Part shown: positions 27,882 through 59,700 of the stretch, in pieces | Position numbering within the stretch: the stretch's first letter is position 1 | How the letters are laid out: each line of letters opens with the position of its first letter | NCBI GenBank assembly: GCA_002189035.1 | Contig: NEEC01000002.1 | Location: 4,650,001-4,714,000, forward strand | Source: Utricularia gibba | Taxonomy: Eukaryota > Plantae > Magnoliophyta | Length of the DNA: 64,000 nt | Reading direction: 5' to 3' | Notes under the pieces: generated by a model | The model's input: only the letters and a program-made list of their open reading frames with translations | Databases searched by the model: none | What the model was told of the DNA's origin: nothing | Position numbers and translations under genes: made by a program

Positions 27882-30800
27882 ATGGCTCAGTCATCGCGGA
27901 GGTACTACGTTGTTGGGGATTACATGGTGGGGAGGCAGATAGGAGCGGGTTCGTTCTCGACGGTGTGGCATGCGCGTCATCGTATCCATGGTACTGAAGT
28001 GGCGATCAAAGAGATTCTCACGGCGCGGTTGAACCCAAGGTTGCAGGAAAGCCTTAAATCGGAGATTTTTATTCTGAAGAGAATAAATCACCCGAATATT
28101 ATCCGCTTACACGATATGATCGAGGTCCCACTTTCTTCTTTTTTCTTCTTCTGAATCGCCATGGTAAATGAATGAATGATTAGATAGACTCCATGAATGG
28201 GTTCTTCCTCGGCAATACCCTTTGTATGGTTATAAGCTTCGAGTTGGTGACTTGGTCGAGGTTCCTCGGTGAAATGCTGATAAATTTGGATTGTGGATTG
28301 TGTATCAGATACCTGCTTTCTCTTCTCCAACATAAAATTTATATCTTGTTTGCTTTAACTATTTTTCTGGCGTAGGTCTGTTGGTTCTAGTTTGGTTTGA
28401 GACAGGTTAATGGGATGCATCTTAAATGCCCGACTAAATGAGCATTTTTATACCTTGACGGGTTAATAGTATTTTACTATTATGTTTTCCAAGATCAGGT
28501 TCATTATGTGTCTTTTGCCTTCCCAATGAATCCTGTTTGTTCAAGCTGTAGGATTCTGGAAAGATTTATATCATTTTGGAATACTGTAAAGGAGGTGATC
28601 TTTCTATGTACATTCAACAACATCAAGGAAGAATCTCTGAGGCAGTTGCAAAGCATTTTATGCAGCAATTGGGTACATTTTTCTGATTTTCCCCTTGGTC
28701 TTCTTCTTCTTTTTCTCTATCTAATGCTGAAACTCATGCAGCGGAAGGTCTTAAGGTTCTTCGTGAAAACAGCCTCATACATCGGGATTTAAAGCCTCAG
28801 GTATGTATCAGAAAAAGAGAACTTTTCACCAAATTCAGCCCTGCTACTTCTGTTTCTAAGTTGAAATAGCATTTGAAGCATAGCTCATCGTAATGCTGAT
28901 CAATGAGCTTCTTAGCTTTGCTTTAGCATGCCCTCTTCTCTTCTTGGAAAACTGGCCTTCACATTTGCACGTTTTGTGTTTCTGGGGCAGAATCTACTCC
29001 TCTCCAGTAAAGATGACAATAGCACCTTGAAGATTGCGGACTTTGGGTTTGCAAGGTGTAGATCATGCATAAATATCCAACATTGTTTGTACGAATGATT
29101 GATTTAGTTAGCCAGTCTTTGGCCTCGCATATTACTTCTACAATCTGCATAAACTTTGTCTGTATTGTCTATTTCTGAAGGTATTCTGAGACCCTTTCGT
29201 CAATTTTTTTTTTTTTTCTAATGCTGAAACACTTCCGTGCTTGTATTAGTCATGGGATGAACCTTGCAATTGTTGATTTTTTTTTTTCCCCTGGGGATGG
29301 GCTATCTGTGATAAGCACCACTAATATTACAAATTTACTTTGTGGTTGAATGCTGTCCAGTTGAGAAGATCTTCAAAATCTCTCTCTCTTTAAATGCTAA
29401 AAATTGAAGGTTTTATATTCTTCCAGGTCCTTGCAACCTAGAGGGCTTGCAGAAACCTTGTGTGGTTCACCATTATACATGGCTCCCGAGATCATGCAGC
29501 TTCAGAAATATGATGCTAAGGTGAGGTATTAACAATAATCAATTTGCCATTGACATAATAGACCTCTGTTAAGTTTACTCCAATAATTCCAGGCAGATCT
29601 TTGGAGTGTTGGTGCCATCTTGTTTCAACTTGTAACAGGGAAACCGCCTTACACTGGAAATAATCAAATACAGGTTGGTTAAGTTTAGGTTATTCTGCAT
29701 GCTCGTTCTGGTGTTTGATTTTCTTTTGTGTCTGAGTTCTGAAATGATCTTGCAGCTTCTAGATAACATATTGAAGTCAGGTGAACTCCAATTTCCACCT
29801 GAGGTGGGGGGTTTGAGTCCACCTTGCATTGATTTGTGCAAGAAATTGCTTCGCTGTAATCCAGGTCTTAAGGAAGCTTCATATTTCATTATACAACCCC
29901 ACACTGATGTAGATCTTCACAATCATCCTTCATTCACAGTACACATTTGTACCATGTTTAATCCCAGTACCTTTTTTGCACAGTTGAGCGGTTGACATTT
30001 GAAGAATTTTTCAGCCATCCATATTTTTTTGAAGGGCATCCTGATGATAGTTTTCGGTACTGAATTCCTTAGTTGAACTTTTACCTGAGTGCCGGAGCTC
30101 TCATTTTCATGTCAATTTTTTTACTGGAAGCAGGAGTGAGCAGTCTGAAAGGGTTTCCTACCATTTTCATCCTGCAATAAGCACGGAGCAATCCTCTCAA
30201 GATGATAGCTTGCCGTTCACACTAGATGATGATACAACTGGTCTGGATGGAAATGCTCCATTTGCTAGGAAGCCAAGTGGACAATCCACACACAGGTTTT
30301 CTCCTGGTCCACAGAGTGTCCCAGTTTTGAATCTTTGTAACCTAGCAGATTCTTCCAACCCCAGAGGTGGTAGGTATTTATATGATCATTTTCATTCTTA
30401 TCTTCCAATGTTCTTTTCTGATGCTGTTGAAACTGACAGTTCTGGATTCAATGGAGTCAATCGATCAGGATTATGTGATTGTCTCAGGCACACAGCTGGG
30501 CTCTTCGACATCAATACGTTCTTCTAAGGCAAGTCACTGTCCCTCGAAATTTGACAGTCATGATTCTAGAAATATGAACTCCACAAGTGAAGGGCTGCCA
30601 CTTACTTGTGGAGCAACTGCTGGGGTCAGTTGCAACGCTAATCTGGAAGATAGACTCTCAACCGCTGGAACTTCCCAACAAGGTTCAATGGATATAGCAG
30701 GTGCTTCTCAACAACCATGTGCCGATAGCCTTAGACGAATCAGTTCATTACAGCACCATGCTGCTGCCATTGTGGAACTAGTAAAAAGCAAGGTTGCCGT

Positions 30801-31731
30801 AAATAATACAGCGTTTTTCTTTTTTCTTTTTTTTTTTAATGTTGAAATGTCTTGGTTGTGGATGGTTGCCCCCTTGCAGCTTGATGCAGGGAAACAACTG
30901 GAAGCCTTTTCGATTCAGCTCGTGATTCTTGCCGTATGGAAGCAAGCATTGAATATTTGCTACGCCCATGCTGCATCAGCTTTTGATGGCAACCGCAGTC
31001 AAGAATCAGCAGGTCTCAAAGAAGCTTCCGAGGCTGAGTGTGGTTCAGACGTCAGTGAACCCGGAGGTACTGCCGGCGCACAGGATCCATTAGGCATTAG
31101 TGCAAAGATAGAGAGAGAATTTCTCCACGAAGTAGAGCGTGCCGAGGAACTTGCTAAAGCAGTAGATCCGGGTAAGATAAGCAGTCCGTCTGATTCCTTC
31201 CATGTCGGTTTTACACCATGTTATGTTTTTCAGGGAACCTGGACATGCCAGAAGCCTTGGAGCTGATATACCAATCGGCCCTAGAGTTGGGTAGACACGG
31301 AGCTGTAAGTAATCATTTCTGGTGACCGAACTCCAATATCCATCCATCCATCCATCCGTCCTGAACCACGGTTGGTGTCGTTGCAGGTGGATGAGTACAT
31401 GGGTGAGATGGAAAACGCCGAAGCCTTGTACTCAAAAGCAGTGGTGTTGTTGCAGTTTCTTCTGGAGGAGGCGCCATCCCTCATTCTGAATCCCCCGTTT
31501 TCGCTCACCAACTCCGACCGGTACCGGATTCAGGGCTACGTGGAGACTCTGTTGAACCGCCAGAGCATCTCGCGATCTCGAAGACGGGAGATTTTCAACT
31601 GTGAGGCCCATTCCCAGTGCCCCCCTGACCGCATGTCCATGTCTACTACTACTACTACTTGCATTGCTTCATTTGTTCATCACAGCCACAGGGAATTGTG
31701 TAGTGTGCATGTGTTGGAATCAATCGAGTAA
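27882..31731 (+). CDS. ATG1: Serine/threonine kinase ATG1 (ATG1c-like), 13 exons, 713 aa as modelled
   Basis: Exons 27882-28124, 28552-28672, 28742-28800, 28991-29055, 29427-29520, 29593-29673, 29756-29864, 29984-30056, 30134-30369, 30440-30792, 30880-31171, 31234-31304, 31387-31731 total 2142 nt in frame. Motifs [38 protein letters not shown]; acidic AIM DQDYVIV (~30465-30483); C-terminal [17 protein letters not shown] and [19 protein letters not shown]. Confidence 0.93.
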
Positions 31732-33043
31732 TTTGATCTGAAATATCCCCTCCCAAATTTCATCTTGGAAACCCAGAGAGAAGATCACGGAATGAAAATA
31801 TATTACTCACCTCTAATTGGTTTTTTTATTATCAAATATGAATACTTTTTATTTTAAAATGAATATGAATTTCAAAATATTTTTATTTTTAATACAATAC
31901 AGAAAAACTAATTTTATTTTATAATAAAATCAAATAGAATGAATAATAAAACATTTTAAATTGACTCGTCTCAACTCTCACATGGACAAAATGAACTCCT
32001 GAGGATTCTGGTGGGCCACACCTCACGCAGGCGGATTTTGCTTTAACCGAAAGCATCAACTACCCAAGGGGGTAAACACGCGAATCTATAATCATCTGGA
32101 GGGCATAAACGTCATACCAGAGAGCACGGCCCAAGACAAAACCTAGAAGCCCATCCATCCATAACTGCCCCCGCCCCGCCGCCTCAGGTAGAGTGAGTGA
32201 GTAGACTGCCGAGTGCTTCACCGCCACCTGGCGGTCCGCAAAGGTATCCTTCCTGACCGCCAGCACCCCGGGCCCACCAACAACCAATTTCTTTTCTTTT
32301 TCTTCGTATTTTTTTGATAATGTTATTCGAATTTAATCTGCAGACAGTTATATAAATATTTTCATGTCACGAATCAATATGTCAAAAGTGTCGGATACCG
32401 AACATAATAATTATTCACTCTATTTGAAATTTAAATACCAATAATTTGGGAAATATTTAATGTCATTAAACTATAAGCAAAAACACATAAATGGCCGGCC
32501 GGTCGGTCGAGCATAGCCAGCCAATGCGCTCGCTCTTCCTTTGCTTTTTCGTATTTAAATATACTGAAAAAATACAATATTTTTTTTCGGGTCGGTTTAT
32601 AAAAATTTCTTTTTATATTTTTAAACGATACAAATTCGTGAAATTAGAGAAATCGAATTGCTCCGAGCAATCACGCGCCGTGTCCGCCGCTGGTCCCGGC
32701 GGTTGCCGCCATGGCTCCACCGCTTATTCCTTTTTCCTTGCGCCATTTTTAAATATAAAACCAGATACCCATTGCCCTGCCCTTTATTCCTTCCACTCAG
32801 CCTACTCTCTGCTTCCCTCTTCCTTTCATCTCCTAGCTGCTCCCCGGCACTGCCCTGCAGTGGGCTGGGTCCCTTCAGATCTTTTCGCTTCATCCTGTGT
32901 CCACCGCCGGATTTTTCAACAACTCCTCTTCCTTCAACCAATCGCAATCGATTCCCATGGCTTCTTTTTGACTGTTTTTTGTTCAAAATCCCCCGCCCTC
33001 ATCCTCCTCTTTCTTTACCACTTTTTTCGTCTTTCGTGTTTTC

Positions 33044-34088
33044 ATGGGGCAGGAGCTGGACGATGTTGAGTTCTGGTTACCATCCGAGTTTCTCACCGAC
33101 GACGACTTGTTAACAGATTTTAAAACTCCTCCACTTCTGGTGTTTCCGAATGGGATTTGGGGAAATTTTCTGGGGGGTTTGAGTGCGCCAGTGGAGTCCG
33201 TCATTGGTGGATCCGCTGAAACTGAGAGCGACGAAGACGACTTTGTACCGGGGCTTTCTCGGAGACCCGGCTACCGATCCTATTCTCCGTCCTCTGACTA
33301 CACGGCGACGAAGGGAACTGTGAGAATGCGCCCGATGTTATCGCATCTCTGTTTTTTTTTTTTGTTTCAATGTAAACTTATTACGCTGTCCACTGCTAGG
33401 AATGGAAGATGTACGGCTCTCCACAGTCCACCCTTCCCTTGAACAGCGATTTGCCGTACGCCGCCGCAGAGGAAATCCGAAGGATCAAAATGTTGGAGCC
33501 CTCCCAACCGCCGCCTCAGCCGCTGTTCGGAAAGAGTTGCGCGGTGACTAGTCCGTTTTGCCCTCAACTACCTCAAAATGACACAGCTCTCTGCCTGGCT
33601 TATCTCCAACTGCAGGCATTCTCTAAAATCCATATTTCTTGTCGATTGTCGCTTCCCTTTCATTTGCCGAACTCTTAAGTTTCAGAGGATGAAGCAACAG
33701 CAGATGATGCGACGCCGAGTTCTCCGACACCCACCGTCGCCGGCGACGTACCATTTCCGTTCTCTGCACCAGTCGAGCCATCCCCTGCGTCCTGTGTCTG
33801 CAACCAAAGCCCCTCTCCTCCCTGACAACACCACGAAAAAAGGGCGAAACGGAACAGGGGTGTTCCTGCCGAGGCTCCTATCCACCTCAGCGACAGACAC
33901 CCTGAAAAAGCAAGGTGCGTTGCAACTTTTTTTCAAACCCGGGTTTCCTTTGCGCCATTAACGCCTGTAACAAAACCAAGCTCTTTTTTCCAACAGTGCC
34001 TCGTCGTGACAAAGAAGGGACTGCAAGGCGAGGTTTCGTAGCAACGAACTCGGAGACTATTAGGCTTCCCAAAGAGTGGATATACTGA
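33044..34088 (+). CDS. Conserved plant protein of unknown function (~272 aa, 4 exons)
   Basis: Exons 33044-33319, 33400-33615, 33680-33914, 33997-34088 (819 nt). Recognisable family motifs LDDVEFWLPSEFLTDDD, ETESDEDDF, MYGSPQSTL, GTGVFLPR and C-terminal LPKEWIY*. The intron 2 donor is uncertain (GC at 33616 or GT at 33544). Confidence 0.8.
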
Positions 34089-34504
34089 ACGGAACCTAAC
34101 ATTGGCGTCCTCCCGATGAGTGATTAGTGGGGAATTAGCGACTAGATTAGTAGGGTCAGGGTGAGTGTTAGGAACAGGAAGGATTACGTGTCGGAAAGGA
34201 ACGGAACTGTATGTAATAAAAGGAAGGCTGAGCCGGTGGGCGGTTCGAGGTACAAGAAAAGTCGTGACGTGTCAGCTTTTGTCCCCCCGGGGAAATTTGA
34301 AAGAAATAAATTATGTTCCTTCTGTTTGAAATTCGAGTGCTCCTCCCAAGGCACTCGACTGTTTCTTTTTCGGTATTAATGATATTATTTTTAATTACTT
34401 TATCGCGGGCTTTTTTTTTTTTTAATTTCAAAGAAGTCAAAGACAAGGAAACTGAGGAGCATTAGAATTCAAAAGGCAGAGGGACATGTGGTACAAAAGT
34501 TTGC

Positions 34505-34876
34505 CTAATTTGGGTTGGGCTTTTGTGCCTTGCATCCGGGCCCAAATGCCGAAACAGCGGATCCAGCTGCGTGTCCCAGCACGGCGGCGATTAGAACGCC
34601 TCCGTTGTAGGAATTCACAGACAACACAAGGATGTAGCCCAGGGCGGCCCGCAGCAGCGCCATCCCAAATTGTCCGCAAATCTTGAGAGCCCGGTTGGAT
34701 TTGGGGGCGCCGGCCTTGGACAAGCCCTCGGCGGCCGCGGCGAGAAGGAAGATGAGGGTGAGCGCCAGAGCGTACATGCCGGAGTTGGCATCCGGCCAGT
34801 TTGGGAACAGGAACAGGGCTTCGCTGCACCAGTAGAAGGAGTAGGGACGGCGGTGCATGTGCGGACTCATCTCCAA
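34505..34876 (-). CDS. COPT: COPT/Ctr-family copper transporter homologue, atypical (no MxxxM)
   Basis: Single-exon 123-aa ORF: SFYWCSEALFLFPNWP, GMYALALTLIFLLAAAAEGL (TM1), LRAALGYILVLSVNSYNGGVLIAAVLGHAAG (TM2/TM3 with GxxxG). Confidence 0.85.
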   Translation of the reverse strand: MEMSPHMHRRPYSFYWCSEALFLFPNWPDANSGMYALALTLIFLLAAAAEGLSKAGAPKSNRALKICGQFGMALLRAALGYILVLSVNSYNGGVLIAAVLGHAAGSAVSAFGPGCKAQKPNPN

Positions 34877-35449
34877 CTTTCAAGTTGTGAGGAAAATGCG
34901 GCGATGGATTTATGAAGAAGTTTGTTCTCGTCTTCTGTCGCAAGAAACTGTAAGGCTGAAGAAACACCTGCACCACATGGAGTGAACGCGACGCAAAGAA
35001 ACGCAGGGAGACGGAGTTTGCACCTGACCAACTTATATGCTTTATTCATAATTTTGAATTAAATTATTTATACAATCAATTCAATTTGGTTCATTTTATT
35101 ATACAAATAATTATTTAAATTTCAAAAAAGTTTAATTTTTTAAAATTATTAAATCGAATTAAAAAATTCATAAATCCAATGTTATAAGAATGATGGGATT
35201 TGGACGTGCAGTGGGTTAAATTTTGATCAAATAAAATGTAATTTATTAGATTGTCTACATACACCATTCATTTAATATGGATGAGTAGATAAATTACCAT
35301 TATCATTAGTTTTTTTTTAGTAAAGTACTTTCATTTGATTCTGCTTCCATTGATTTGAAGAAATATTTAATCGCTATGATGACAAATTTCCTTTGATTTT
35401 GTGATATCATTTTTCATGGTTGGCCAGTAATATCCACTCCTTATTGCTT

Positions 35450-36345
35450 TTCTTCATAGAGATCGTATCCCAATATGATTGCTGCACTCTTCCTTGTGCA
35501 AATCGGTAATTAGTTCTTAGGATTGTTCTTTTCTAATACTCCTTAGTAGGAGTCTATCAAAGAATTTCTTGTAGAGAATTCCATCAAGCAATGTATATCT
35601 TTTTGTCCTAACCTCTAGTTTTCAGGCTTCTAGTTTGTCAATTGGATTTTCCCCGATTTGTAGGTACTGAAGGTGACATCCAATCTTAACGACAGGTCTG
35701 GGGAGGAATATTGCTTATGGGTTGGTGAGAAATATGATTAACTGCTTGCAGGGTCATTGAGGACTTGTCTCATAACCGGATGACCACACTCCCCTTTCTC
35801 AAATCCTAAAACCCTATGGCAAATCAGGCCAAACTCTACGCCAGTATATTTTCCTCATGAGCCACGTGTGATAGGGTGAACTCTTTAAAGATATTTGCAA
35901 GTTCCTTCACCTTAACAAATATAAAGCCATCAAAGGATCATGAGTTTCGTACTCGTCTGAAAATTGCCCTTTCACCAACCGCAAATCGGTATAGATATCG
36001 AGTTCTGTGACTCCAAGTTCCTTGGCCATCTTCATTCCCTTGATTAGAGCTTCATACTCGACTATGTTGTTGGTGGAGGGAAATAAAAATTTCACAATAA
36101 AGTAGATATAATCTCCATCCTAATTTTTTATATATATTCCTCCTCCAACCCCGTTATATGTCAACCCATCAACATACATAGTGCATCGATCATTGACTTC
36201 CATGAATCGGTTAGTCGTCCTAGTCATCTCCACTACGAAATCGGTGAGTGACTGAGATTTGATTGCTATTCTTGACTTGAATTTGATATCCATAGTGCTT
36301 AACTCGACTGCCCATCTGATATCTTATCTTGTGGAGATATATGTA
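35450..36345 (-). mobile_element. Tat-like gypsy relic with archaeal-type RNase H
   Basis: Minus-strand WAVELSTMDIKFKSRIAIKSQSLTDFV, MYVDG, and ORF 35907-36095 FPSTNNIVEYEALIKGMKMAKELGV...IYTDLRLVKGQ. Confidence 0.7.
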
Positions 36346-42042: not shown

Positions 42043-44042
42043 TCACTGCCTGGCGGCGGCGGCGGCGGCACTCTTCATGACAGCTTCCTTCATGATTTGA
42101 AGCGAGTTCTGGAAATCGTCACAGACCTGATGGGGATCAGTTATCACCCGATTGTCGACCGCCATGAACACCGCCAACTTTTTCCCATAGGTTTGGAAGT
42201 GGATCACCAAGGGCTGAATACAAGTAACGTTCCATCTTTCCGAATCACAACAGTACACCTATTTCGTCCTTCATACCAGAAATTGGATGCTTACCCAGGG
42301 AGCTCCACTGACGGCTGCGGCGAGGTAAGTGAGGGGATGCCCCAAGAAGTTGATCTCCTCCGCAGGTCCAGGGATGTTAGAGACGGCAAGTGTTAAGTGT
42401 GCAGATAAGTTACCGATGAAACGAGTTACGACCTGGGAATTCGTTCCAGTTAAACTATAAAAAGACTAGGAGGAAGTTTGTCTTTCTGTGTTTGAAATTG
42501 AGAAAGGAAAATGAGAAGATATGAATGAAAGCGTACGTACATCCCGTCCCAGAAAGAGGTAGAGGAAGGGCTGCATAGCGTAGTACTGGATTCGGGGTAG
42601 CCATGACAGCTTCTTTCGATCCATGACCGCCTTAGAATCACGTACGTGAGCCAAGGGGTCCTCTTCGGTGCTCAGTTTCATGGGAACTATCATGAAGCTG
42701 ATCAAGTTCCCCCACATCTTCAGTTCCCGCATCTTCCTTCCATCTCGTATCGTCTCGAGTGTTTCACACTGAAGAACCAACCAGAAAGTTTTTAAAGGAA
42801 ATGGGATGGGAATGCACAAGAAAATCTTTCAAGTTGCTTACTTCGACCATAGCAGTTGGGCGTAGATTGAATGGTAAGAGTGCCCTTATACGGGGTTTCT
42901 TGAGGTGATTGTTGATCTTCTGCTTGGCCTCTGCGCCATTTCCTTCCTTCTCTGATACAATGCGGAGTTTCAGAATGATCTTTTTGTTGAAGGGGAGGAG
43001 CAGAAATTCACTTTACCATATCTGATTCTCTCAAGATAACCAGCGATGGCCGCCTGAGTCATCCCCAAGAAGACGTCGTTGGCCGTCTGCCAAAAGAATC
43101 CAAATTACAGATTCTCATTTCAGTAAAAAGGGTACAGGAGTAGAACAGAAAAAATTACCGCTTTTAATGAATTCTTGATAAGCTTAACATCCTCGAAACT
43201 GCGAACGCGGTGGACATATCTCATGTGAGAAGCGGGGTTCTCCATCTTGACCCAGGGCTGGTCCGGATCCGGGTTGATCGGATTCGGAGAGTCTTTCAAG
43301 AAGAGAACAGTAGCGATGTACTCCACAATGTCCATGACAGTGTAGTAAACAATCTGGAGCATTCTCCAAAACATCAGGGCCGCAGACAGGACACGCCCGT
43401 TACTGTTACCTTTCCGACGTTGACGTCGAACCGGAGTCCGAAGAACCGGCAACGCTTCGGGATCGGAGATTTTCCTTGCACAGGCGGAAATGATCGACAT
43501 GAGCGATGCGCCGTCGCCCACGGCGTGATGGAGCTTGAGCACCGCGGTGGAGGTGGCGTTGGTGGTCTTCACGTTGAGTATATGGAGCTCCCACAAGGGC
43601 TTGGAGCAGTCCATCGAAACATCCGCAATGGCCGATATGAAGTCCTCCACCAACTTATCCCCATCTCCGGTTACTTGGTCTATATCTGGCACCAGAACGT
43701 GCTCGTCGATGCTGGGTGTTGTCCGTTTCCACGACATTTTCAGACGCTTTTTATCCTCCATAACCTGGGAAACAGAGAATATCAGACACCACCCTCCTCC
43801 TCAAAATGATCCAAGAAGCAACGCCTGCCGGCTCACTCGCCACTCACCAGGATGCTGGAGAAGGGAGGATGCCTGATCAGTGTTTCTGACGCCAGATGCT
43901 TCACGAGCGCCACCTCCAGTGGCGTATCGAACCCCATGACTAAGACCACACACAGGTTGAAGTTGTACGTATGCATCATTCTGGCGTAGGGGTCGGTGCT
44001 CACCATTTCTTCATCACCCTTCCCCGTCATTCTCTCAGACAT
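42043..44042 (-). CDS. WSD1: Wax ester synthase/diacylglycerol acyltransferase (WSD1-type), 7 exons, ~505 aa
   Basis: Exons 44042-43848, 43764-43159, 43086-43017, 42951-42842, 42768-42541, 42432-42295, 42213-42043 total 1518 nt in frame with GT-AG introns. SKPLWELHILN, catalytic HHAVGDG, TANDVFLG, WGNLI, SNIPGP, IHFQTY. TATA-like TATAAAG at 44077-44071. Confidence 0.92.
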
Positions 44043-46356: not shown

Positions 46357-46374
46357 TGGTGAACCCAACGTGAA
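46357..46374 (+). promoter_or_regulatory. Primer-binding site complementary to tRNA-Trp
   Basis: TGGTGAACCCAACGTGAA starts directly after the LTR. It matches the complement of the plant cytosolic tRNA-Trp 3' end as I recall it (TGGTGAACCCGACGTGAA) at 17/18. Confidence 0.7.
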
Positions 46375-48499
46375 GAAAGCAGCACAACACCGACAACCTT
46401 CAAAAACTGGTTTGAAACTCCAAACTCCACACTTGTTATTGCAAGGTTCTATCTTCTGCACCCCTGCAAGCATCAAATTCACCATGTCTATAAAAAATAT
46501 ATCACCGCCAACTTTTGATGGCAAGGAATATGATATCTGGGCTCCAAAAATGGAAATATATCTCCAACTACACGGCCTCTGGAAGATTATTGCTACTGAT
46601 CCCATCTTTGAGGGAACGTCTGATGAGAAATCTGCTACAGAAAAACCCTATAGAGAAAAAGAAATTCAGGCCTTAGCAGTATTAGCCTCAGCCGTGGTTG
46701 GAGATGCTTACCGCTGCATCACTAGGAAATCTCCTCGAGAAGCTTGGCTTACTTTGCAAAAAACCTTTGAGGAAACCAAGGAAGACAAGCAAAGGGAGAT
46801 CCAAAGATTGTGGAATGAAGTCTACAACTACAAGATAAAGGATGGAGAAGTTGCTATCAGCTCTAAACAATTGTTGCAGAACTTGGAAAAACTGAAGAGG
46901 CTCGGTGAAGAAGTTGATGATCGGGAGGAACAAAAGCTCAAAGCTCGTGTCATTCATGGAGCACCATCTGAATTTGATGCGGTTATAGAATTGCTGGAAG
47001 CTACCGGATTTCTCGAGACCCTGAGCCTGCATCAACTTCTCAACCACCTCAGGAATGTAGACAGCAGACGAAAATCTCGCAATGAAGAAAAATCACTCAA
47101 AGCTGCATTCAAAGCTTCATTCTCTCTAACTGGATCAAAAGGAGAAAGTACAAATTCACCATATGTTGCTCCCAACTTGCGACCACAGAAAAAAGAAAAA
47201 AAGGGACCTCATCCTCCCTGTCCATATTGTGCCAAGAAAAATCATTTACTTATGAGCTGCTTCTGGCATCCAGATGCCTTCTGCACGAACTGTTCCAACA
47301 AGGGGCATGTGGAGCGTGTGTGTCCCTCCAAACGGTCACAAAATTCTGGATAATCAGCTGCTGTACCTACTGAAAATTCGAAAAACTCAACAAACCATGT
47401 ACCTTCTGATGATATGAATATGAAACTGAAGTCTTCAGCTAACTCTTTATGCAGCAACACTATAATCACAGATTTCTTAGACCTTCGGCACAACTCCACG
47501 TGGTTTGTAGACAGCGCCTGCAGTAATCATCTGACCAATGACAAAAATATGTTCACCACTTATTCCACTGTATCAAGAAAATCACTTACCATAGCTGACG
47601 GCTCTCCTATTGTGGTAGAAGGCGTGGGATCCATCTGTCTAGAGATAGATCAAAATTTGATTAAGATTGCCGATGCATTCTATGTCCCTCAAGCATCACA
47701 CAATCTATTGAGCGCAAGACAGTTAATAGAAAATGGATATCAATTCATTCTCAGAAATAATACATGCCTGCTCAAAGATGCTTCACAGAATGTGGCACTT
47801 AGAGTACCAATGGTAAACCGTTTGTTTCCTATTCAATGTAAATCCACTAACAACAATGTAAGTTTTGCAGCTATTGATACATCATATTTATGGCACAAGA
47901 GACTTGGACACCGTCATTTTGAGGTCATGCACTCAGCTCAAGTTCAAGAAAATGTACAAGGAATTCCCAAAATAAAAGATTGGAAACATTCGTGTAGTAC
48001 TTGCCTTCTTGGCAAGATGAACCGGAATTCCTTCAAGCGAAGAACTGCGATCTCAGACTCTAAATTGAAATTGGTGGTTAGTGACGTCTGTGGCCCTATG
48101 CATGTAGATACCCTGGGGGGAAAGAAATTTTATGTCATTTTTATAGACGACTACTCACGGTACACTTGGGTTTACTTCCTCAAATACAAGTTAGAGGTCA
48201 CTAAATATTTCAAAATGTTCAAAGCCATGGCTGAACTGCAAAGCAAGTGCAAAATTCTTACTCTTCTCACCGATAATGGTGGTGAATATAAGTCGGCTGA
48301 AATCCGTGATGTCTGCAGTGCTAGCGGGATTATACACCAATTCGCGATGCCATATACCCCTCAACAAAACAGCATCCGCGAAAGGAAAAATCACACAATA
48401 ATCAATATGACCAGATGCCTTCTAATGCAACATAATCTACCACTGCATTTCTAGGGGAAGTTGTAAACATAACAATATTTTTATTAAACCGTCTACCCA

Positions 48500-49095
48500 T
48501 GATGACACACATTTTTCATGAAATTTATAATGCAAAATAGTTATATTTTATTATGGTTTAGGTTAGATAAATATGGTTTTTCATGTTTTAGTGGTGTTTA
48601 TGTTAATCTCATGTGATTATGTGAAAAGTGGACTAAATCAAGCCACAACTCTTGTTACGGATGTTTCAGTAAGTTCAACAGGGAGATGAGCCGAAAATCA
48701 GACTTGCAAACGTGTAAAACAAGCAAAAAAATGCACAAAATCTGGTAAAGTACAAAGAGCATTGTTCTACTACCACCGCAGCCTGCAAGTTTAGGGCTGC
48801 GGAGCAGTACTGGCGATCAGGAAATTAATTCAGATAAAGGAAATTAATTCGGATAAAGGAAATCTGGTAGTAGAGCATTGTTCTACTACCAGTACTGATC
48901 GCCAGGAGCAGTACTGGCGATCAGGAACAGTACTGGTAGTCAGAAACAGTGCAATGGAGTGAAGCAAAAGAAAAGGAAATTAATTCGGATAAAAGGGGAG
49001 AGCGCGAAGAACACAGCGAGGAGGACGCAAAGGGGTCTTCTTCCCCAACGAGAGAAACACCAACCAGAGGGGGGAAGGGAGGCCTTCATCACCAA
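48500..49095 (+). mobile_element. 5' fragment of a family 'A' Athila LTR replacing the 3' half of the copia integrase
   Basis: Starts TGATGACACACATTTTTC and is colinear with 8407-~8895. The copia integrase breaks at LNRLP and resumes only in the INT-RT spacer. Confidence 0.8.
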
Positions 49096-51493
49096 CCAGA
49101 GCTAGAATATGGACTTCACTTCACAGAATCAATGGAACAGGAGGAAGATGAGGCACAAAATTCCTTAAATTTAGAAGAACACCTCGAAGAAAATCAAGAT
49201 CTTATGCAGACTGTGTCAGAAGATTAAGAAACCAATAATCACTCCTATGTACCTCATTTCCTACAAGACAACCTTGATCACCATGGAGACTACGACTCTT
49301 ATGTTCCAATATCTGATATTTATGATCATTCTCTGATGATCTGTGAGCCTATCTCACCATCTAAAGCCCTACGTGACCCTGCATGGAGAGAATCAATGAA
49401 CAATGAATTGAAGGCAATCGTAGAGCACCAAGTATGGACAGCAGTGGACAGGCCACCTAATGTTAAGCCACTTGGCTTGAAATGGATCTATCAAACTAAG
49501 CTTAATCTTGACAGCTCAGTTAATAAATTGAAATTTAGACTGGTTGCAAAAGGCTATTTACAGAAAGCAGGTGTGGATTATTGGGAATCTTTCGCACCTG
49601 TTGCCCGCTTGGATACTGTCAAGTTGGTGATTGCCTACGCTGCCTGCCAAGGATGGACTTTACATCACCTGGATATAAAAAAATGCTTTCTTAAATAGAG
49701 ATCTGAAGGAAAATATCTATGTGGAAAGCCCTCCTGGTTTTACACTAATAGATGGTCCACATAAGGTATTGAAACTGCAGAAAGCGTTTTACGGACTCAA
49801 ACAGGCACCAAAAGAATGGTATGATACCATAGACACATTTTATCATCAGCTTGGATATGTGAAGAGCAAAAATGATCCTACCTTATACACTCTACTACCT
49901 TATACACTCTAGACAATCATGATGGACGAATTATAATATCACTTTATGTAGACGATATACTACTGACTGGAAACAATGAGGCACTAATTGCAGAACAAAA
50001 GGCCAGACTCAAAGGAAAGTTCGAATTAACAGACCTAGGACCAACATGCTAAATTCTGGGGCTGGAGATAATTCAAGATCACAACTATGTATTTCTAAGC
50101 CAGCAAAAATATACAGAAGACCTACTGAAGAAGTTTGGCATGGAAAACTCTAAAGTAGCAGCAACTCCATTTACCCCTTATTTGAAGAATAAGGCGAATC
50201 AAAGCTCGAAATCTCTCCACATTTCATAGGTAAGCCCTCAAGACACTCCTAAAACACAGGTAAATATACAAGAATATCATAGAATTATTGGGGCTCTCCT
50301 CTATCTCACGTCAACCAGACCGGACATTACCTTTGCTGTGACTTTTCTCTCCAGGTTTATGCATCATCCTCTTGAGTTACATCTTAAAATAGCCAAGAAA
50401 ATATTTAGATACCTGAAAACTATAAAAACGATGGGATTATATTTAAAAAAAAATACTGACGTGTCTTTGCAAGGATTTGTGGATTCTGACTTTGTAGGGT
50501 ACGAATCCGACCTCAAGTCAACCACCGGATACTTATTCACGTTGGGGGTCCGCTGCCTCCTCTTGGAATAGTAGAAAACAGAGCCTCGTTGCACAATCTT
50601 CTGCAGAAGCAGAATATATGGCAGGTGCATCAGCATCCAATCATGTACAATGGATACTGAAACTATGTGATGACCTCAAAATCAAAATCAAGAAGCCTCT
50701 TATCTTGAAAATCGATAACAAGTCCGCAATAAGCATAGCCCAAAATCCGGTTATGTTTGGCAAAACGAAACATATTAAGATCAAATATCATGTTCTGCGA
50801 GATTACATCAAAGAAGAGAGCATAAAGTTGGAATACTTGCCTTCAGAAGAACAAGTCGCAGATATTTTGATCAAAGCCCTCTTTCCCAACCATTTTTCCC
50901 AAATTCAGGAACTTTTAGGGCTTCACTCAAATCCCTTGAATTCTACTGTCCCACCTCATGTGCATCTTCAAGGAGGAATGTTGACGGTTGAAGGTGAACA
51001 AGAGGAAAGACAGCATCATTCAGTAAGCAAAACAGGAGGGTCGAGTCTGGAGATGTCGAGAATGACAGGCGGAAGAAAGAGAAAGAAGAAGATGCTACAT
51101 GGACCGAAGCTTATTATGCTGGACCGTAATGCTATGAAATGGGCTGCTGAAAGCACTTCAACTAGCAAGACGTATTTGGAACCATTCAAAGCCCAACGAG
51201 AGAGTGTCATGGCTACTGAACTAGAGGATCAGCAACGGCTACCTCCTACGGCATAGACTATCGTTATAGACAAACTTGTATATAAATATCTGTGTTCAGA
51301 TCCAAAAATGTAAGCAAGGCTTTTCATATCAAACCCTGTGTCCAGAACAACATATGCTTCACTCTACTACTACATTTGCTCTCCTCCGTTAAAGCACACA
51401 CCTTAGTTAGTGCTATCACATAAACTAGGTCTAACGCTAGAAAAACACTTCAATCAAGAATGGGTGCGTGGATTGATTACCTGCCGAGACCTA

Positions 51494-54400
51494 TCACCAA
51501 CCTCCGTTGCTGCTGCCCCAGGCGCCTTGTGAAGCCTGTTCCCATGCATCAGATGGTTTTTCCTCCCTTCTGGAAGATGTGCCAGGTCCCCCATCCATCA
51601 GAGGCATCACTTTTACCACCCCATGCATCAGATGGTTTTTCTTTCATATCCCAAGCATCAGATAGTTTCTTCTCCTTGCTAGAAGACCGCCTGCTCCCCA
51701 TCCATCAACGGCATCTTGTTTCTTACCCATGTCGGAAAGTTTCGCTTTACTCCATGATGAGGAGTCATCTAATTCCTTTGAATGATCTGATCATAATAAT
51801 AAGAAGCTTCTCAGTGTGAGGTTTTTATATTCAACAAAAAAAATCAGCTCGTTATATACAAGCTCATAGTGCAAATTACCAGATTCTCTTTTTTCAGAGT
51901 TGACTAATTCCCAAGGATGGGCTCCTGCTGCAACATTAATTGATTCCGTGCCCATCCCCCGTTCACCTGCAACTGGTTTAGTTGAATTCCAACTCTTAAA
52001 GGAAGGCGCCTTTTTCAGAGCTTTCAATGTTCCAACTACTTCTATGTTGTTGACTCCAACTCTGACCACCAATCTGCCTCCAACATCATTACGTTTCCAT
52101 CCCTCCTTGCCAATGTTTGAGCTATTACCCCAGCTACGGGAGTTGTCCGCGTCTGAATTATCTCCAGTATTTCTCCAGTCACCACGACCACCCCTGCCAT
52201 AGGACCTTTCTACATCACCTCAACCTTGGAAGCCACCATGGTCACCCCTACCTCGAAAGCGGCTGCGATCACCCCTCCCCTGGAAGCCACGCTCATTTCC
52301 ACATCTTCCCCCAAAACCATTTCCGGAGCTCCAATTGCCCTTGTAACCCCACGAGTCATTGCTCGAGCCAATTTCATTGGTTCTGCTCTTAGAAAAGTTA
52401 CCTTGGCCCCAAACACCTATTCTTTCACTAACATCATTCGATGTTGATTCCTTATTCTTGTTAGAAGCATTTCCTTCACCTAAAATACTGGAACTTTTAC
52501 TACCCAAAGCTGAAGTAGCATTAGCCTAAGTACTTAACTGATTAGTGTCTCCCCACTGAGAATTCGAATTTTCACTTGTAGATTTCCATCCCTTAGCTTT
52601 GCCTCCAGCATTTGTGTCGGGTTGATTCTCCCATGAAAGCTTATCAGAAGATAAAGCTTTACCATGTCGGGTTACGCGCAGCGGAAGGTGGAAAAAACAA
52701 AAATTTTCCCTTTTTGTAACCAACGACATCTCATATCGCTTATACCACCCAAACAACGATAAATCTAGTTTGTTCACACGAACCAGCGACATCTCATATC
52801 GCTTATAACACATAAATCCAGTGCTAATATCTCATATTAACACTTGAATGCCAACGCAGAAGAAACACAGGTAATTAGCGAAGAAAATTACAAAACTTGA
52901 AACCAGAGTCGAGTTCTCTTCTTCGTATCTCTATTCACCGGACTCGTTTCTTCCTAGAGCGTCTTTCCTCTTTTGGAGCTTGAACACCTCTTCCCATAAG
53001 AACACCAAAAACCCTAGGAAATAAGCCAATTGCCTCCTATTTATAGCCAAGCATTGGCATGCATTTTAATGCGGTACGCTTTTGAATGTGGGCTAATAAA
53101 TATGGGCTTGGGCCTAGTGGCCCAAATCGTCAGCCTATATTATTTGGGCCTTGGTTCCCTATATGGGACTGGGCCCATATAACCAATGTTTAACCAACAT
53201 GTGATCCAAATTTAAAGACATGCTAGAGTCTACCAAAACCCGAATCACAAGCGTCTCAGACAACTTCTAATTCTTTGTGTGTGTGACTCATTAGGTTCAT
53301 TTTTAATCAGCAATGGGAGGCGAGAAATCTCATTTCTCTAACAACAATATTGTCCCAAGATATCGTGTCTCTCATAAAATACAAGGGATGCCTAGCATAG
53401 CATATTGTATTTACCCGATTAAAACTGAATACGATATTCAATGAAGAACCTCAATTGCTATCCTTATGAATATCCCTTCATTGGAGACCTTGATCTAGAA
53501 TGGAATCATGGATAATCAAATTCCATTTCATCTAAATCATCACGATTATCTTGAACTCACGTTTCGACGGCAAAACTAGAACTTGGAATCTCATTCCAAT
53601 ATCTCGACAACCTGGCCAGGAATTTACCCGACAAAACAATCAGGAAATCTGAAGTCTCATCTCCGTTTACCCGGAGTGATGATTCCCATCTTGGTTATTC
53701 AAAGATCTTCATATACTATCAACTTAGACCATCACTATTGCTGACATGTATATTTCAACAAGCCTAAATAGTAACAAATCTAAGGCAATAATATATAAGA
53801 CATAATGAAACCTCAAGTCGAAGGATTTCCATAAAGCAATATGAATAGCATTGTGTTGACATGTGTAAAATACCATGTATATGTTATTCAACGTCACATG
53901 TTTGGTCAGCTCATCTCATGAGCCCCCACGTGTTTATTCACACATCTCATGTCAAGCAGCATTTGACTCACTGCCTACTGTATCTTGATAAACATTTTAT
54001 CAACAAAGTAAAATAAATAGAGGTGACAGTTAAGCCAACTATGATGCCCAATCAAAGTATTCAAACTGTGAACCTTTCGAATATATATGTTACAGGAGAA
54101 TCTGTCGAATACTTCTAACAACTTAAAAATACATTCTCCAAACATATAATTCTGGACATTGCCGAAAAAAAGAGAACAACAATTATGGGATGCTAGATTA
54201 CATGGCTTTTGATCATACTTCCAACATACTAGACGGCTTTGACCCTCCCCAACTTGTATCAATGCATCGTGCATCATTTATTCCCTTACCAGCTCCACCC
54301 CAGCCACTATCTCCATGATCTCCTATGTGTTCCGAATTGCCCGAGGTTTCATTCCCACCTTTAGTATTTACCTCAGCATTTCCATCCGGTGGCTTTTCAC

Positions 54401-54562
54401 AAGCTGATTTCCAAGGAGAAGATGACCTGTCCTCATTCTGTCTCCACGAGGAGTCACCCTCATGCTCAGTCAATACATCTTCAGTTCTTTCCCATGACGA
54501 TTTAGAATTCTGATTACCCCATGAAGCTCCACAGTCAAAAACCTCAGATTTTGGTTTGCTCC
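51494..54562 (-). pseudogene. SPT5L/KTF1(RDM3)-like WG/GW-rich C-terminal fragment, split by an LTR
   Basis: About 1.5 kb of coding-like sequence (54562-54203 and 52664-51494): at least a dozen WG/GW dipeptides, KGNWSSGNGFGGR, the RG-rich tract RGFQGRGDRSRFRGRGDHGGFQG, KPSDAW repeats, ending GAWGSSNGGW*. It retains a GT-AG intron (51879-51787) that splices in frame, and carries premature stops and frameshifts. Confidence 0.65.
52665..54202 (-). mobile_element. Angela-like LTR (~1.5 kb) inserted in the SPT5L-like fragment
   Basis: The minus-strand 3' end TTCCGCTGCGCGTAACCCGACA has the same type of terminus as 38250-38291; TG...CA ends. The host peptide WKYDQKP|GKALSS flanks it. No clean TSD. 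Confidence 0.6.
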
Positions 54563-54777
54563 TTATCTGTTATTGAGGAATATGATTTGCAGTTGGGGCA
54601 TCAAATGCATAGTTTGGTCAAGAAAATGGGTTTCGATGGAATGGCATCTGTTTCTAGTTGTCTGATTACTATATATAGTAAGGCGGGAGATTCATCTTTG
54701 GCTGAGAAAATGTTTAATGATGCTCCAATGAAGGACATTGTGTCCTGAACACTCTTCTTGGTACTTGTGTCGCACTG
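54556..54777 (+). pseudogene. PLS-class PPR gene fragment
   Basis: DLQLGHQMHSLVKKMGFDGMASVSSCLITIYSKAGDSSLAEKMFNDAPMKDIVS*NTLL has typical PPR L/S motifs, with the conserved W of VSWN read as TGA. Confidence 0.75.
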
Positions 54778-56019
54778 TTTTATTTGGAAATTACTCTAAA
54801 ATTTTAGTTTATTGAGTATTTTATAATGCATATGATTTAAAAATTAATTTTCGTACAAAAGAAGATATTTATGTTCAAACCAATTTTAATTAACAAAAGG
54901 AATCAGACTTTGTCATATTAATAATCTTCTACTAATATATTTATTATACATACAACATATAAATTTTCTATTTTTAAAAAAATCGAAATAACAACAAATT
55001 AAAAACTATTTTTACTCACAATGCTACTTGAGTATTTTCGTTAAATTAATAAATAATTTTTTTAAAAAATAAATAGCATATTAAAAAATAAATTCTTTTA
55101 CCTAATTCATAATTTTTATTACTGCACAACTAAAATGGTTATTATTATGGATTATGAAAAATATTTAAATATCTACAATCGTTATTGTTATTTTTAATTT
55201 ATAATTTTTTTTTAAATAAATTACATTTTATTGAACATAAGCATGGGTCTTATAAAGAAAAAAATGAATAATTAAAAAAACTAAAATACCTCGAGTTAAA
55301 ATGAAAAATATAAATATTATTAAAATCATTTTTACATATGATTAAATAATTTTTTTAATTCATTTTTGAATAAAAAATACATAATTTGATGTGAAAATAA
55401 TTTTATAATTATAAATACATTATAATCGCCTTAGATTCACTCTCCAAAATTCTGAATTTGACATAAATCTTTATAATTTAACTACTATTGAACTGGGTGA
55501 AAATTCAATAGAGACCACTCAAGTAAAATTATATATATTTTGTTGTTTTATTTTGAATTATTTAAAATTTTTTATTGCAATAATTTATTTACATTGTTCT
55601 TGTATAAGTGTGACTTATAATTACGAATAATTGATTGAAACCACTTATGCACATAATCATGGAGAATATGATTTCTATGAAGATTTACAAGTTATTTCTT
55701 TAGACACTTGATATTACAATAATATTAAAAGTATTTTTTTTAAATATCCATTCATTCAGTAACGTAAATCTTTGTTTTTGTGGCAACAACAAATCCAATA
55801 ATTCAAGAAGAACATGCATTTTCAAGTTAATCTGATAATGAATCTGTTCTAAATTCAAAAGATATGATTGTTGATGAAGTTATCAAGTCAACAATTCAAG
55901 AGACAATTACAAATTTCTTAAGTCAAATAACTCTTGTAGAAAGTGAAAATATATTTACTTATACGGATACTTTTGAAATAATGAATAGGATGAATTCTTA
56001 CAATGAAGAAAAAATGTAA

Positions 56020-56153
56020 CTGAAGTAAAGTATGCATTTTCCTAATAGATAAAATCTAATTGATGCAGTCACAAAGTATCATATTTCCTTAGCACAACGA
56101 GAATTCAAAGTTATAAAGAATGACAACAGACAACGTCGGATAGAATGTGCATA
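56020..56153 (+). mobile_element. MuDR/MULE transposase N-terminal DNA-binding domain relic
   Basis: PNR*NLIDAVTKYHISLAQREFKVIKNDNRQRRIECA fits the F.sk..l..Av..y.i...refkv.ks...r..v.C pattern. Confidence 0.55.
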
Positions 56154-56761
56154 GAGAAGAATGAAAAAATCAAATTGTCTTTTTTACTTACATTAGGATA
56201 TCAAGTAAAAATAAATATTGTTTAAAAATGACAACAGACAGTGTCGAATACAATCACATTGCTTGTTTGAATGTTAACCTCACTACAATGTTTGTCTTGC
56301 CTTAACTTGTTTCTTTCATCATTTAATTTACTGTTTTCACATATGAATCGAAATAGTAACTTGAGAATGTTTAAGTTTCTTTTAAGCATGATTAATTTTT
56401 AAATTAAGTGAAATATTTACTTTTAAATTTCCTGACATGCTGATCTACTCATGTTTGTTTTTTTAGTGTAGAAAGCATTTTAAAAATTTTACTAGTTTTT
56501 TTTAGAGTAGAAACCAACTTTCCAATAAATATCTCTTGTTTAATCATGCATACATGCAGGATTTGCAACTAACAACCATTTGATTCAGTTTTACCATTAC
56601 TATATTATTTTCTTCCTGAATATGATATACATTATTTATTCAGTTTTATAAATATTTTTTATCTTTATGAAATAACCACTTTTTAGAAATTATTTCATGT
56701 AGTGCTCATGTTTTAATTTATATTTTTTGATAGCACATGAATTTTCCTACGTTTATGATAT

Positions 56762-59700
56762 TGATAAACAGAAATTCCTAATGTCGTTGCAAAAATAGAA
56801 ATTTCGTTATCAAATAAATTTATATGCCCTAATCTACACAAAATAAAAATTTGGAAAACTTGTATAGTGGATATCGGGGTCGATCACGAAGAGCTTGTGC
56901 TTGCTAAGTGTTTTAATAAATGCATAATTTGGGATAACAATAAGTCTTAGTCTAAGCTCGGAGCAACAGTGGTAAACAAGTGCGGTAAACAAGATCAGTA
57001 AACAATATCAGGTTTCAATGCGAAAGATAACAAGTACTGGTTTTAACTCAGAATAACACGAAGATGCTTTATGGATATGCGCATCATAATAACTCTTAGT
57101 CCGAGCCTTGAATAGTTTTGAGCTCTCGTACGCATCATTTCTCAACTCCTCCAATTCTGAAAGCTGTAGCATCCTTTGACTTGCACTAAGGTTCTTATCC
57201 AAGTTCAACTTCTTCAAAGCCCACCGGGCTTTGTGCTCAAGAGCTGTTGGTAGTCTACAAGGCTTCCCATATACCAACCGAAATGGTGAGGTTCCAATGG
57301 AAGTCTTGTATGCTGTTCGTATGGCCCAAAGTGCATCCTTTAACCTCATGCTCTAGTCCTTCCTGTTTGGGTTCACAACTTTCTCTAGAATTTGTTTGAT
57401 TTCTCTATTAGAGACTTTAGTTTGTCCATTAGTTTGTGGATGGCATGCTGTAGAAGGCTTGTACCAAACATTGAAATACTTCAAAACACTCCTTAAGGCT
57501 TGATTGTAAAAATGGGTTCCCCTATCACTAATCAGCGCCTTAGGAGTTCCATATCTCTAGAAGATGTTGTTGCGCAAGAAATTAATCACAGTCTTGGCAT
57601 CATCAGTCCGTGTAGGCATTGCCTCAATCCATTTGGACATTTCGTTTTGAAGTAAGAAATGGTCCAATAAAATCTATACCCCATACATCAAATAATTCAC
57701 ATACCAGGATTCTTAGCTGAGGCATTTCGTTTTGATTTGATAAATTTCCTACCCTTTGGCATGGTTCACAACCTTTGCAATAAGCATAACAATCTCTAAA
57801 AATATGTGGCCAATAAAATCCACAGTCTAGAATTTTTCTAGCTGTTCTATTTGGTCCATGATGGCCACCAAAAGGTCATGCATGACAAGAATCAATTATT
57901 TTTGGAATTTCACTTTCATGAACGCACCTTCGAATGATGCCATCATTGCATCTCTTCCATAAATATGGATCATCCCATATGTAGTATTTGGCATTACTCT
58001 TCAACTTGATCCTCGCATGGTAGTCCATTCAAGGTGGCATCGCCCCTGATGAAACAAAATTTGCAAGATCAGCAAACCACAATTCACGTATACTAGTCCG
58101 AACTGAGAATAGTTGTTCATCCTGAAACATTTCAGCGATGATTCCATCTCCTTCACTTCCTTCAATCCTGCTGAGATGATCATCCACCAAGTTCTCCCTT
58201 CCAGGCATGTACTTTATCTCAACATCAAACTCCTGGACGAGAAGGACCCATCTGATAAGTCTCGGTTTGGAGTCCTTCTCCATCAAGTGCTACACCGCCA
58301 AATGATCAGTGTATACCACCACTTTGCTACCTAAAAGATATGAACGAAATTTTTCCAAGGCAAAAATAATAGCAAGAAATTCCCTCTCATTGATGGTATA
58401 ATTTTTCTGGGCCTCATCCAAGGTTTTCAAAGCATAAGAAATAACATGGTGCTTTCCTTCAATTTTCTGTCCCGAAACAGCACCCACAGCATGATTACTT
58501 GCATCACACATGATCTCAAAATTATATTTCCAATCTGGTGGTTGTATCACAAGTGCGGTAGTAACAGCCTTTTTCAAAGAATTAAAAGCTTGCTTACATG
58601 AGTCATCAAAATCAAAGGCAACATCATTATGCAACAACCTACTAAGAGGCAAGACAATTTTCGAAAAATTCTTAATGAACCTCCTATAAAAACCGACATG
58701 GCCTTAAAAGAATCTAATACCTTTCACATCAATAGGATAAGGAAGTTCAGACATAATCTCAATTTTTGCCTTATCTACCTCAATCCTTTTTTAAGAAATC
58801 ACATGTCCTAAAACAATTCCATGATCCACCATAAAATGACATTTTTCAGAATTTAAAACCAAATTTTTCTCCACACATTTCGTCAAAACCTGATCTAAAT
58901 GGTTTAAGCATGACTCAAAATTTTCTCCATATACCGTAAAATCATCCATAAATATTTCAATAAAATCATCACCAAAATTAGAGAAAATACTGGTCATACA
59001 CCTCTGAAATGTGGCTGGAGCGTTACACAATCCAAAGCGCATCCTCCTATAAGTATAAATTCCAAATGGGCACATGAAGGTTGTCTTATCTTGGTCCTGC
59101 CCTGAAATAGGAACCTGATTATATCCAAAATATCTCTCTAAAAAATAATAAAACGATTTTCCAGCCAATTTTTCCAACATTTGATCAATAAAAGGCAAGG
59201 ATAATGGTCTTTCTTTTTCACTTCATTTAATTTTCGATAATCATTTTGCACCCTTTGTGGAACAAGCTCGCCTTTCTCATTTTCCACCACAGTCATCCAT
59301 GTTTTCTTTGGCACCACGTGAATGGGGCTCACCCATTCACTATCTGTGATAGAGTAAATAATTCCTGCATCATGGAATTTAACAATTTCTTTTCTTACCA
59401 CCTCCATCATGTTTGGGTTGAGGCGTCTTTATGGTCGACAAACTGATTTTGCACCATCCTCTAGAAATATTCTATGCATACATATGGATGGGAAGATCCC
59501 CTCAATGTCATCAAGTGTCCAACCTATTGCCTTCATGTTTCTGTTCAGGACCTCGAGCAGTTGTGACTCTTGGTCTGAGCTTAGACCAGTGGAGATTATA
59601 ACAGGATTCCTGAACTCTACGTCAAGAAAAACATATTTTAAACGGTTAGACAATGGTTTCAATTCAGCTAACCTCTCTTCTTGAGTCCTGGCTTGCACCA

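Follow-up and report, generated by a model that had tools for sequence, protein, structure and literature searches.

The window, that is, the whole stretch of 64,000 nt of the Utricularia gibba genome that was analyzed, carries one gene of the Ctr/COPT family of copper transporters on its minus strand, next to an expressed gene on the plus strand. The features of this part of the window are as follows.

30300-31760: upstream gene, covered by the RNA assemblies X1-X4 at a depth of 42-199
32800-34319, plus strand: neighbor gene, tail-to-tail with the COPT gene, expressed and spliced (depth 5-9, GT..AG joints)
34411-34423, minus strand: run of 13 A residues (A13), 82 nt past the COPT stop codon; relic of a retrocopy poly(A) tail or intergenic low-complexity sequence
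34505-34870, minus strand: single-exon Ctr/COPT coding sequence, 121 amino acids plus a TAG stop codon at 34505-34507 (ORF list, PF04145, homologues at 45-55% identity)
34547-34603, minus strand: TM3, residues 90-108, with an intact GxxxG motif (G99-H-A-A-G103, 34562-34576) (AlphaFold2 helix)
34610-34693, minus strand: TM2, residues 60-87, with VLSVN replacing MxxxM (sequence; AlphaFold2 helix)
34715-34783, minus strand: TM1, residues 30-52, with conserved GMY and Glu48 (AlphaFold2 helix; conserved columns kept)
34829-34861, minus strand: N-terminal HMHRRPYSFYW, the counterpart of MHMTFFW, with Tyr at the column of the canonical Met before FYW (alignments)
34880-34882, minus strand: in-frame TGA, three codons 5′ of the COPT ATG (three-frame translation)

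The COPT ORF starts with the ATG at 34870 and runs on the minus strand to its TAG stop codon. Because the TGA at 34880-34882 is in frame, the N-terminus cannot extend upstream, and its shortness is real for this sequence. The product matches the Pfam Ctr family (PF04145) with 40.5 bits (cut-off, 25.3; E = 5e-10). A chance ORF is ruled out by protein matches down to E = 2.5e-17 and by the retention of 28 of the 37 alignment columns that are at least 85% conserved; most of the nine changes in these columns are conservative. No second Ctr copy was found within the 64-kb window.

Residues of TM2 determine the unusual character of this product. TM2 reads YILVLSVNSYNGG (also given as GYILVLSVNSYNGG; residues G-Y-I-L-V-L-S-V-N-S-Y-N-G-G), in which VxxxN takes the place of MxxxM. 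Direct reading of the minus strand gives GTG (34625-34627) as the codon of Val82 and AAT (34613-34615) as that of Asn86. The segment preceding TM1 is HMHRRPYSFYWCS; 11 residues, including one internal Met, precede FYW, vs. 30-39 in most Lamiales relatives. The scaffold features GMY, Glu48, Arg74, Tyr79, S-x-N-G-G (with the NGG motif intact), and GxxxG are kept, and Gly99 and Gly103 are invariant in a 51-row alignment (A2). The earlier note had described an intact COPT homologue that has lost both MxxxM methionines, and every descriptive element of that claim (ORF, codons, NGG, and GxxxG) is correct. A remnant of the ancestral N-terminus was sought in another frame, and the likeness found (PHFPHNLKVGDESAHAPPS vs. 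LPLHHNIISAPPPP) is too weak for a claim.

An upstream ORF of about 22 codons (ATG...TAA) lies at 34900-34967 on the minus strand, within what would be the 5′ leader of the COPT gene, and a TATA-like site lies near 35072 on the strand of the COPT gene. GTAC copper-response motifs are not in excess upstream of the gene (2 vs. 3.1 expected). At a greater distance, at 43123-43761 (minus strand), lies an acyltransferase exon of WS/DGAT type, which matches PF03007 (E = 5e-11) and has an HHxxxDG motif. Long ORFs of LTR-retrotransposon type occupy 46370-51256 and 57008-62083, with gag, integrase, and reverse-transcriptase pieces of both copia-like and gypsy-like kinds, and the part of the window from 46370 to 62083 is transposon-rich for a compact genome.

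Transcripts were examined in X1-X4, which are spliced RNA assemblies; X2-X4 are identical to the window sequence. The neighbor gene at 32800-34319 served as the internal positive control for the RNA runs. Its introns lie at 33320-33399 and 33913-33994, the segment 33613-33682 is also spliced in some contigs, and the introns of the neighbor genes measure 62-87 nt, a length that, like the Lamiales placement of the COPT protein (see below), fits U. gibba. No RNA contig in the four assemblies covers any part of 34437-36200, which includes the whole COPT coding sequence and its presumed promoter, contigs being able to show presence and not absence; nor was any RNA run containing the stretch listed. 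The missing contigs limit COPT expression in the X1-X4 samples without proving silence.

An X1 contig skips the 70-nt segment 33613-33682 of the neighbor gene, an X4 contig retains it, and X2 contigs leave it uncovered (one ends at 33615 and the next starts at 33683). Skipping shifts the reading frame and may represent alternative splicing or intron retention. X1 derives from another accession and differs from the window by 18 single letters over 30.7-34.1 kb. Past 34264, the X1 transcript of the neighbor gene continues with letters unlike those of the window and then with a poly(A) run; an indel-rich allele or a different 3′ end may exist at this site, beside the 3′ flank of the COPT gene.

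Placement in the COPT4-like Subfamily

A full HMMER search against 1.84 billion representatives gave 132 matches, 37 of which have E ≤1e-10 (best E = 2.5e-17) and none of which exceeds 46% identity. Seeding a profile search with the window protein plus its best relative (L001:278-706) gave 111 named proteins, and the top matches are Lamiales proteins named 'copper transporter 4(-like)' from Salvia, Sesamum, Penstemon, Erythranthe, Paulownia, Striga, Dorcoceras, and others. The 121-residue product itself is not on record in an exact look-up of protein records, and a single-sequence word search gave three matches (best, 52% identity), which indicates that the collection holds no close orthologue. 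A sequence search of the PDB with the COPT protein gave no match even at E up to 10. The database protein P0001 (208 amino acids) is an artifact in which a TGA is read as sense; the real ORF is L001:278-709, with the stop codon at 707-709 and a product of 143 amino acids.

In a maximum-likelihood tree of 64 rows, the window protein lies inside a Lamiales COPT4-like clade, with support of 97/95 for the smallest supported set (23 rows) and 93/88 for the 21 core rows. No other row of the tree has so long a terminal branch (1.68 substitutions per site vs. a median of 0.2), and because of this length, the exact sister of the window protein is unsure. This tree places the gene in the COPT4-like subfamily, and the right comparison is with this subfamily and not with canonical COPTs. 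Arabidopsis COPT4, which had been named as a precedent, was correctly chosen.

The states at the two filter positions (first Met/second Met) were compared in 112 aligned rows. M/M is present in 85 rows, I/M in 16, V/M in four, I/V in four (Dorcoceras, Primulina, Lithospermum, and Brassicaceae COPT4), I/A in one (Penstemon), and M/I in one (Cinchona). VxxxN, the conservation of which across relatives had been raised by the earlier note, is confined to the window gene (V/N in one of the 112 rows). As subfamily states, Ile or Val occupies the first position in 20 rows, and Val, Ala, or Ile occupies the second position in six. The sampled tree requires at least seven changes at the first Met and at least five at the second, the latter being separate losses. 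At the Met-before-FYW column, the relatives have Met (62), Leu (16), Thr (11), Val (7), or Trp (3). The N-termini of Lamiales COPT4-like proteins contain 0-2 internal Met and 3-7 His residues, whereas canonical COPT rows have a median of eight Met residues.

Judged from these alignments, loss of the Met before FYW and loss of the first MxxxM Met are common traits of Lamiales COPT4-like proteins, and the second Met has been lost repeatedly; Asn86 and the extra shortening of the N-terminus alone are particular to the window gene. The three losses relative to canonical COPTs that were listed at the outset are all present, but two of them are already common in Lamiales COPT4-like proteins and are not unusual.

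Like canonical Ctr1/COPT1, the window protein has the Pfam Ctr domain, three TM helices, the GxxxG packing motif, and a predicted trimer. Unlike these proteins, it is devoid of the hallmarks of Cu(I) transporters, namely MxxxM in TM2, the Met just before TM1, and a Met-rich N-terminal ectodomain, which are held to be necessary for Cu(I) uptake (PMC3103425, PMC10648262). Rice COPT2, COPT3, and COPT4 form heteromers with COPT6, which indicates that COPT subunits can rely on, or work through, other members of the family (PMC3103425). The rice COPTs keep MxxxM, unlike the window protein.

Arabidopsis COPT4 is without the key Met residues, and its role in copper homeostasis is doubtful (PMC4400860). 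Brassicaceae COPT4 (P0019, 'Copper transporter 4') shares with the window protein the Ctr fold, the lack of a Met-rich N-terminus, and the retention of GxxxG and S-x-N-G-G. Both MxxxM methionines are replaced in both proteins (I..V in Brassicaceae COPT4 and V..N in the window protein), but Brassicaceae COPT4 is only about 33% identical to the window protein (alignment A2) and has Val, not Asn, at the second position. The tree, in which the relevant forks are open, gives no single origin for Brassicaceae COPT4 and the asterid COPT4-like genes.

Lamiales COPT4-like proteins (Sesamum P0160, Erythranthe P0167, Penstemon P0161, and Dorcoceras P0170) are in the same clade as the window protein, are likewise encoded by a single exon, and share with it FLF-x-x-WPD, GMYALAL, and SYNGGV-IAAVLGHA-G. 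Their first Met is often Ile or Val, and both Met residues are likewise missing from the proteins of Penstemon (I..A) and Gesneriaceae (I..V). Lamiales COPT4-like proteins are 70-87% identical to one another, whereas the window protein is 48-55% identical to them. The window protein further differs in an N-terminus that is shorter by about 20-25 residues, in the unique Asn86, and in the absence of the HSP20/FKBP neighborhood (see below). Met-less COPT4 proteins are already known, and the window gene is an extreme example of them, not a new system.

Selection and Genomic Origin

For codon analyses, the coding sequences of seven Lamiales relatives were taken from their contigs. Pairwise dN is 0.41-0.47 in pairs that include the window gene, with dS saturated or undefined; among the relatives, pairwise dN is 0.07-0.26 and omega is 0.07-0.25. 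Because dS is saturated or undefined in the window pairs, a branch model was used in place of pairwise dN/dS, with our own GY94-F3x4 likelihood, a fixed topology, and two placements of the window branch. The background omega is 0.16. Omega on the window branch is 0.10-0.11, which does not differ from the background (p = 0.4-0.6), and is bounded from above only (95% upper bound by profile likelihood, about 0.33) because of synonymous saturation and a shift in GC3 (0.74 vs. 0.48-0.62). Omega = 1 is rejected on this branch (2ΔlnL = 28-35, p = 1e-7 to 3e-9); the earlier note had regarded a dN/dS near 1 as one mark of a decaying pseudogene.

A model-free comparison is available from four-fold sites in codons for the same amino acid, which are 21-44% identical between the window gene and its relatives and thus near saturation, vs. 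about 50% identity for the amino acids. In a neutral simulation run to about 55% amino-acid identity, which corresponds to about 0.3 substitutions per site, the ORF stayed open in 3.6% of runs, with indels uncounted. The indels that separate the window gene from its relatives are all in frame. These data indicate that purifying selection has acted on the coding sequence along almost the whole of its branch, the length of which is due to numerous substitutions, synonymous and nonsynonymous alike, and not to relaxed constraint. Published work reports elevated nuclear substitution rates in U. gibba (PMC3141634).

The omega of about 0.11, the rejection of omega = 1, and an ORF that is open despite saturated synonymous sites refute a pseudogene in long decay. 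Of the young pseudogene proposed by the earlier note, the part that implies long decay is therefore discarded; very recent silencing is still compatible with the missing RNA contigs and is discussed below.

In Sesamum, Erythranthe, Paulownia, Penstemon, and one Logan contig, the COPT4-like gene adjoins HSP20/UDPGT/DUF3527 genes and FKBP-TPR or further Ctr genes. When the contigs L002, L005, and L006 were compared with the 64-kb window by tblastx, the Ctr gene alone matched, and HSP20, UDPGT, DUF3527, and FKBP-TPR were absent. Because the ancestral neighbors are missing from the window, the copy may be a relocated paralogue. The gene could thus have arisen by duplication and relocation, perhaps as a retrocopy, from a conserved COPT4-like gene that would still reside at the ancestral HSP20-FKBP locus elsewhere in the genome, and such a duplicate would evolve freely or gain a new role. 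This origin is considered possible but rather doubtful; it is compatible with any of the functional readings given below, and its likelihood is counted outside their sum. It is favored by the HSP20/UDPGT and FKBP-TPR (or further Ctr) context in the contigs named above, which the window lacks, and by the A13 run past the stop codon, whereas no target-site duplication of at least 8 nt was found around the possible retrocopy, and the omega well below 1 argues against free decay. Intron loss is useless as a test for a retrocopy because the parent genes are intronless. The U. gibba genome is heavily rearranged, so that lost synteny is weak evidence for relocation.

Predicted Trimer and Probable Role

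The AlphaFold2 monomer, predicted from the 51-row alignment, has helices at residues 30-52, 60-87, and 90-108, with a mean pLDDT of 66. A Foldseek search of the PDB with this model, a small, low-confidence three-helix bundle, gave nothing significant, and assignment of the Ctr fold therefore rests on sequence and secondary structure. The three-copy prediction has a score of 0.55 vs. 0.00 for the best control; in calibration, the 0.55 mark is reached by 21 of 30 proteins solved as one-chain pairs and by none of 23 solved single chains. The trimer runs agree in at least 76% of contacts, with a partner pLDDT of at least 54, and the lowest-error contacts include 82-82 and 86-86 across copies. The trimer model, the construction of which the earlier note had suggested, places the Val82 and Asn86 rings on the three-fold pore axis, at the positions of the Met rings of Ctr1, and favors a resemblance to Ctr trimers. 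The score may stem from solved Ctr1 trimers that the model has learned and is not evidence of assembly in the cell.

With confidence only a little above even, the gene is considered to encode a COPT4-type protein that is maintained by selection, acts as a subunit that does not conduct Cu(I) or is modulatory, and is weakly or conditionally expressed. The protein would keep the Ctr-type trimer scaffold or would join canonical COPT subunits, as rice COPTs do. Without thioether rings in TM2, Cu(I) would be unable to pass, and it is this predicted lack of passage that points to a non-conducting or modulatory role of the COPT4-type subunit. Expression would be low or limited to certain conditions.

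Recent silencing is the next reading to be considered and is judged unlikely. The gene would have been functional for most of its history, its transcription would have ended, perhaps owing to the loss of its tissue context in a plant that has no roots, and no disabling mutation would have occurred as yet. The four assemblies fit this account in that they contain no contig for the gene even though both upstream neighbors are covered, as does the lack of a listed RNA run with the stretch; contigs, however, show presence and not absence. Shortening of the N-terminus by an in-frame stop codon, the longest branch in the tree, a position outside the ancestral neighborhood, and GTAC motifs below the expected number are also in its favor. 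Against it, the ORF and its start codon are intact, all indels are in frame, and GC3 is 0.74 in a region of 37% GC, which shows no drift to local composition. In the simulations, moreover, the probability that the ORF is still open has already fallen to about 0.5 by about 0.05 neutral substitutions per site, and this limit is lower with indels included; because ORFs are lost so rapidly, any neutral phase must have been very short relative to the branch.

A broader reading, which is regarded as improbable, takes the COPT4-like class as a whole to consist of conserved Ctr-fold proteins that do not conduct Cu(I). Here, in a carnivorous plant that evolves rapidly and is probably without roots, the pore re-lined with Asn would serve a channel for a new ligand or ion or a regulator, or the protein would act as a dominant-negative brake on copper uptake. 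This reading arises from the background omega of 0.16 despite repeated loss of pore Met residues. Also improbable is that the Ctr fold here forms a channel for something other than Cu(I), such as a harder cation, which a ring of Asn carboxamides under a ring of Val would pass or bind: Asn at the second Met position has no parallel in the 112 aligned relatives, and Asn86 is on the modeled three-fold axis of a scaffold under purifying selection, but the family offers no precedent, Val, Ala, or Ile at this position elsewhere suggests that it is unconstrained once Cu(I) conduction has been given up, confidence in the trimer is moderate (pLDDT 54-72), and no expression is seen in the four RNA assemblies.

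For a long time, Arabidopsis COPT4 has been passed over as a family member that is probably inactive. COPT4-like genes are under purifying selection across Lamiales, yet the second pore Met has been lost at least five times, and even the most divergent copy, the window gene, still evolves as protein-coding sequence. This pattern, seen at the level of sequence, argues for a COPT4-like function that is independent of Cu(I) conduction through Met rings. The locus alone would be a modest result, an unusual gene of a known subfamily that can nevertheless be explained and whose current expression is unproven, and the wider COPT4-like pattern may be more useful than the locus itself. It provides a natural set of variants (M/M, I/M, I/V, I/A, and V/N) for functional tests.

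Further Ctr-type Genes in Lamiales

Just downstream of the COPT4-like gene, four Lamiales genomes contain another Ctr-like gene, which is highly divergent, at the following positions.

L006:10821-11210: second divergent Ctr-like gene
L008:11343-11639: second divergent Ctr-like gene
L007:11344-11643: second divergent Ctr-like gene
L005:11386-11682: second divergent Ctr-like gene

TM2 of these products resembles YLAIIAILATDF, both filter positions being without Met, and the products are 28-32% identical to the window protein. A Pfam search with the Erythranthe product gave no match. Representatives of the 'TTDF/ATDF' type are P0071, P0092, P0120, and P0135. The second Ctr-like gene may represent a conserved, unnamed Met-less subfamily of Ctr proteins.

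The tandem cluster of Paulownia includes a third gene (L007:13356-13790), a canonical COPT with a Met-rich N-terminus and MLSVM. At the matching place in Penstemon (L008:12445-12753), there is a Ctr match with 42% identity to the window protein. These loci of Paulownia and Penstemon indicate that the Ctr cluster of Lamiales comprises three genes, which differ in functional type.
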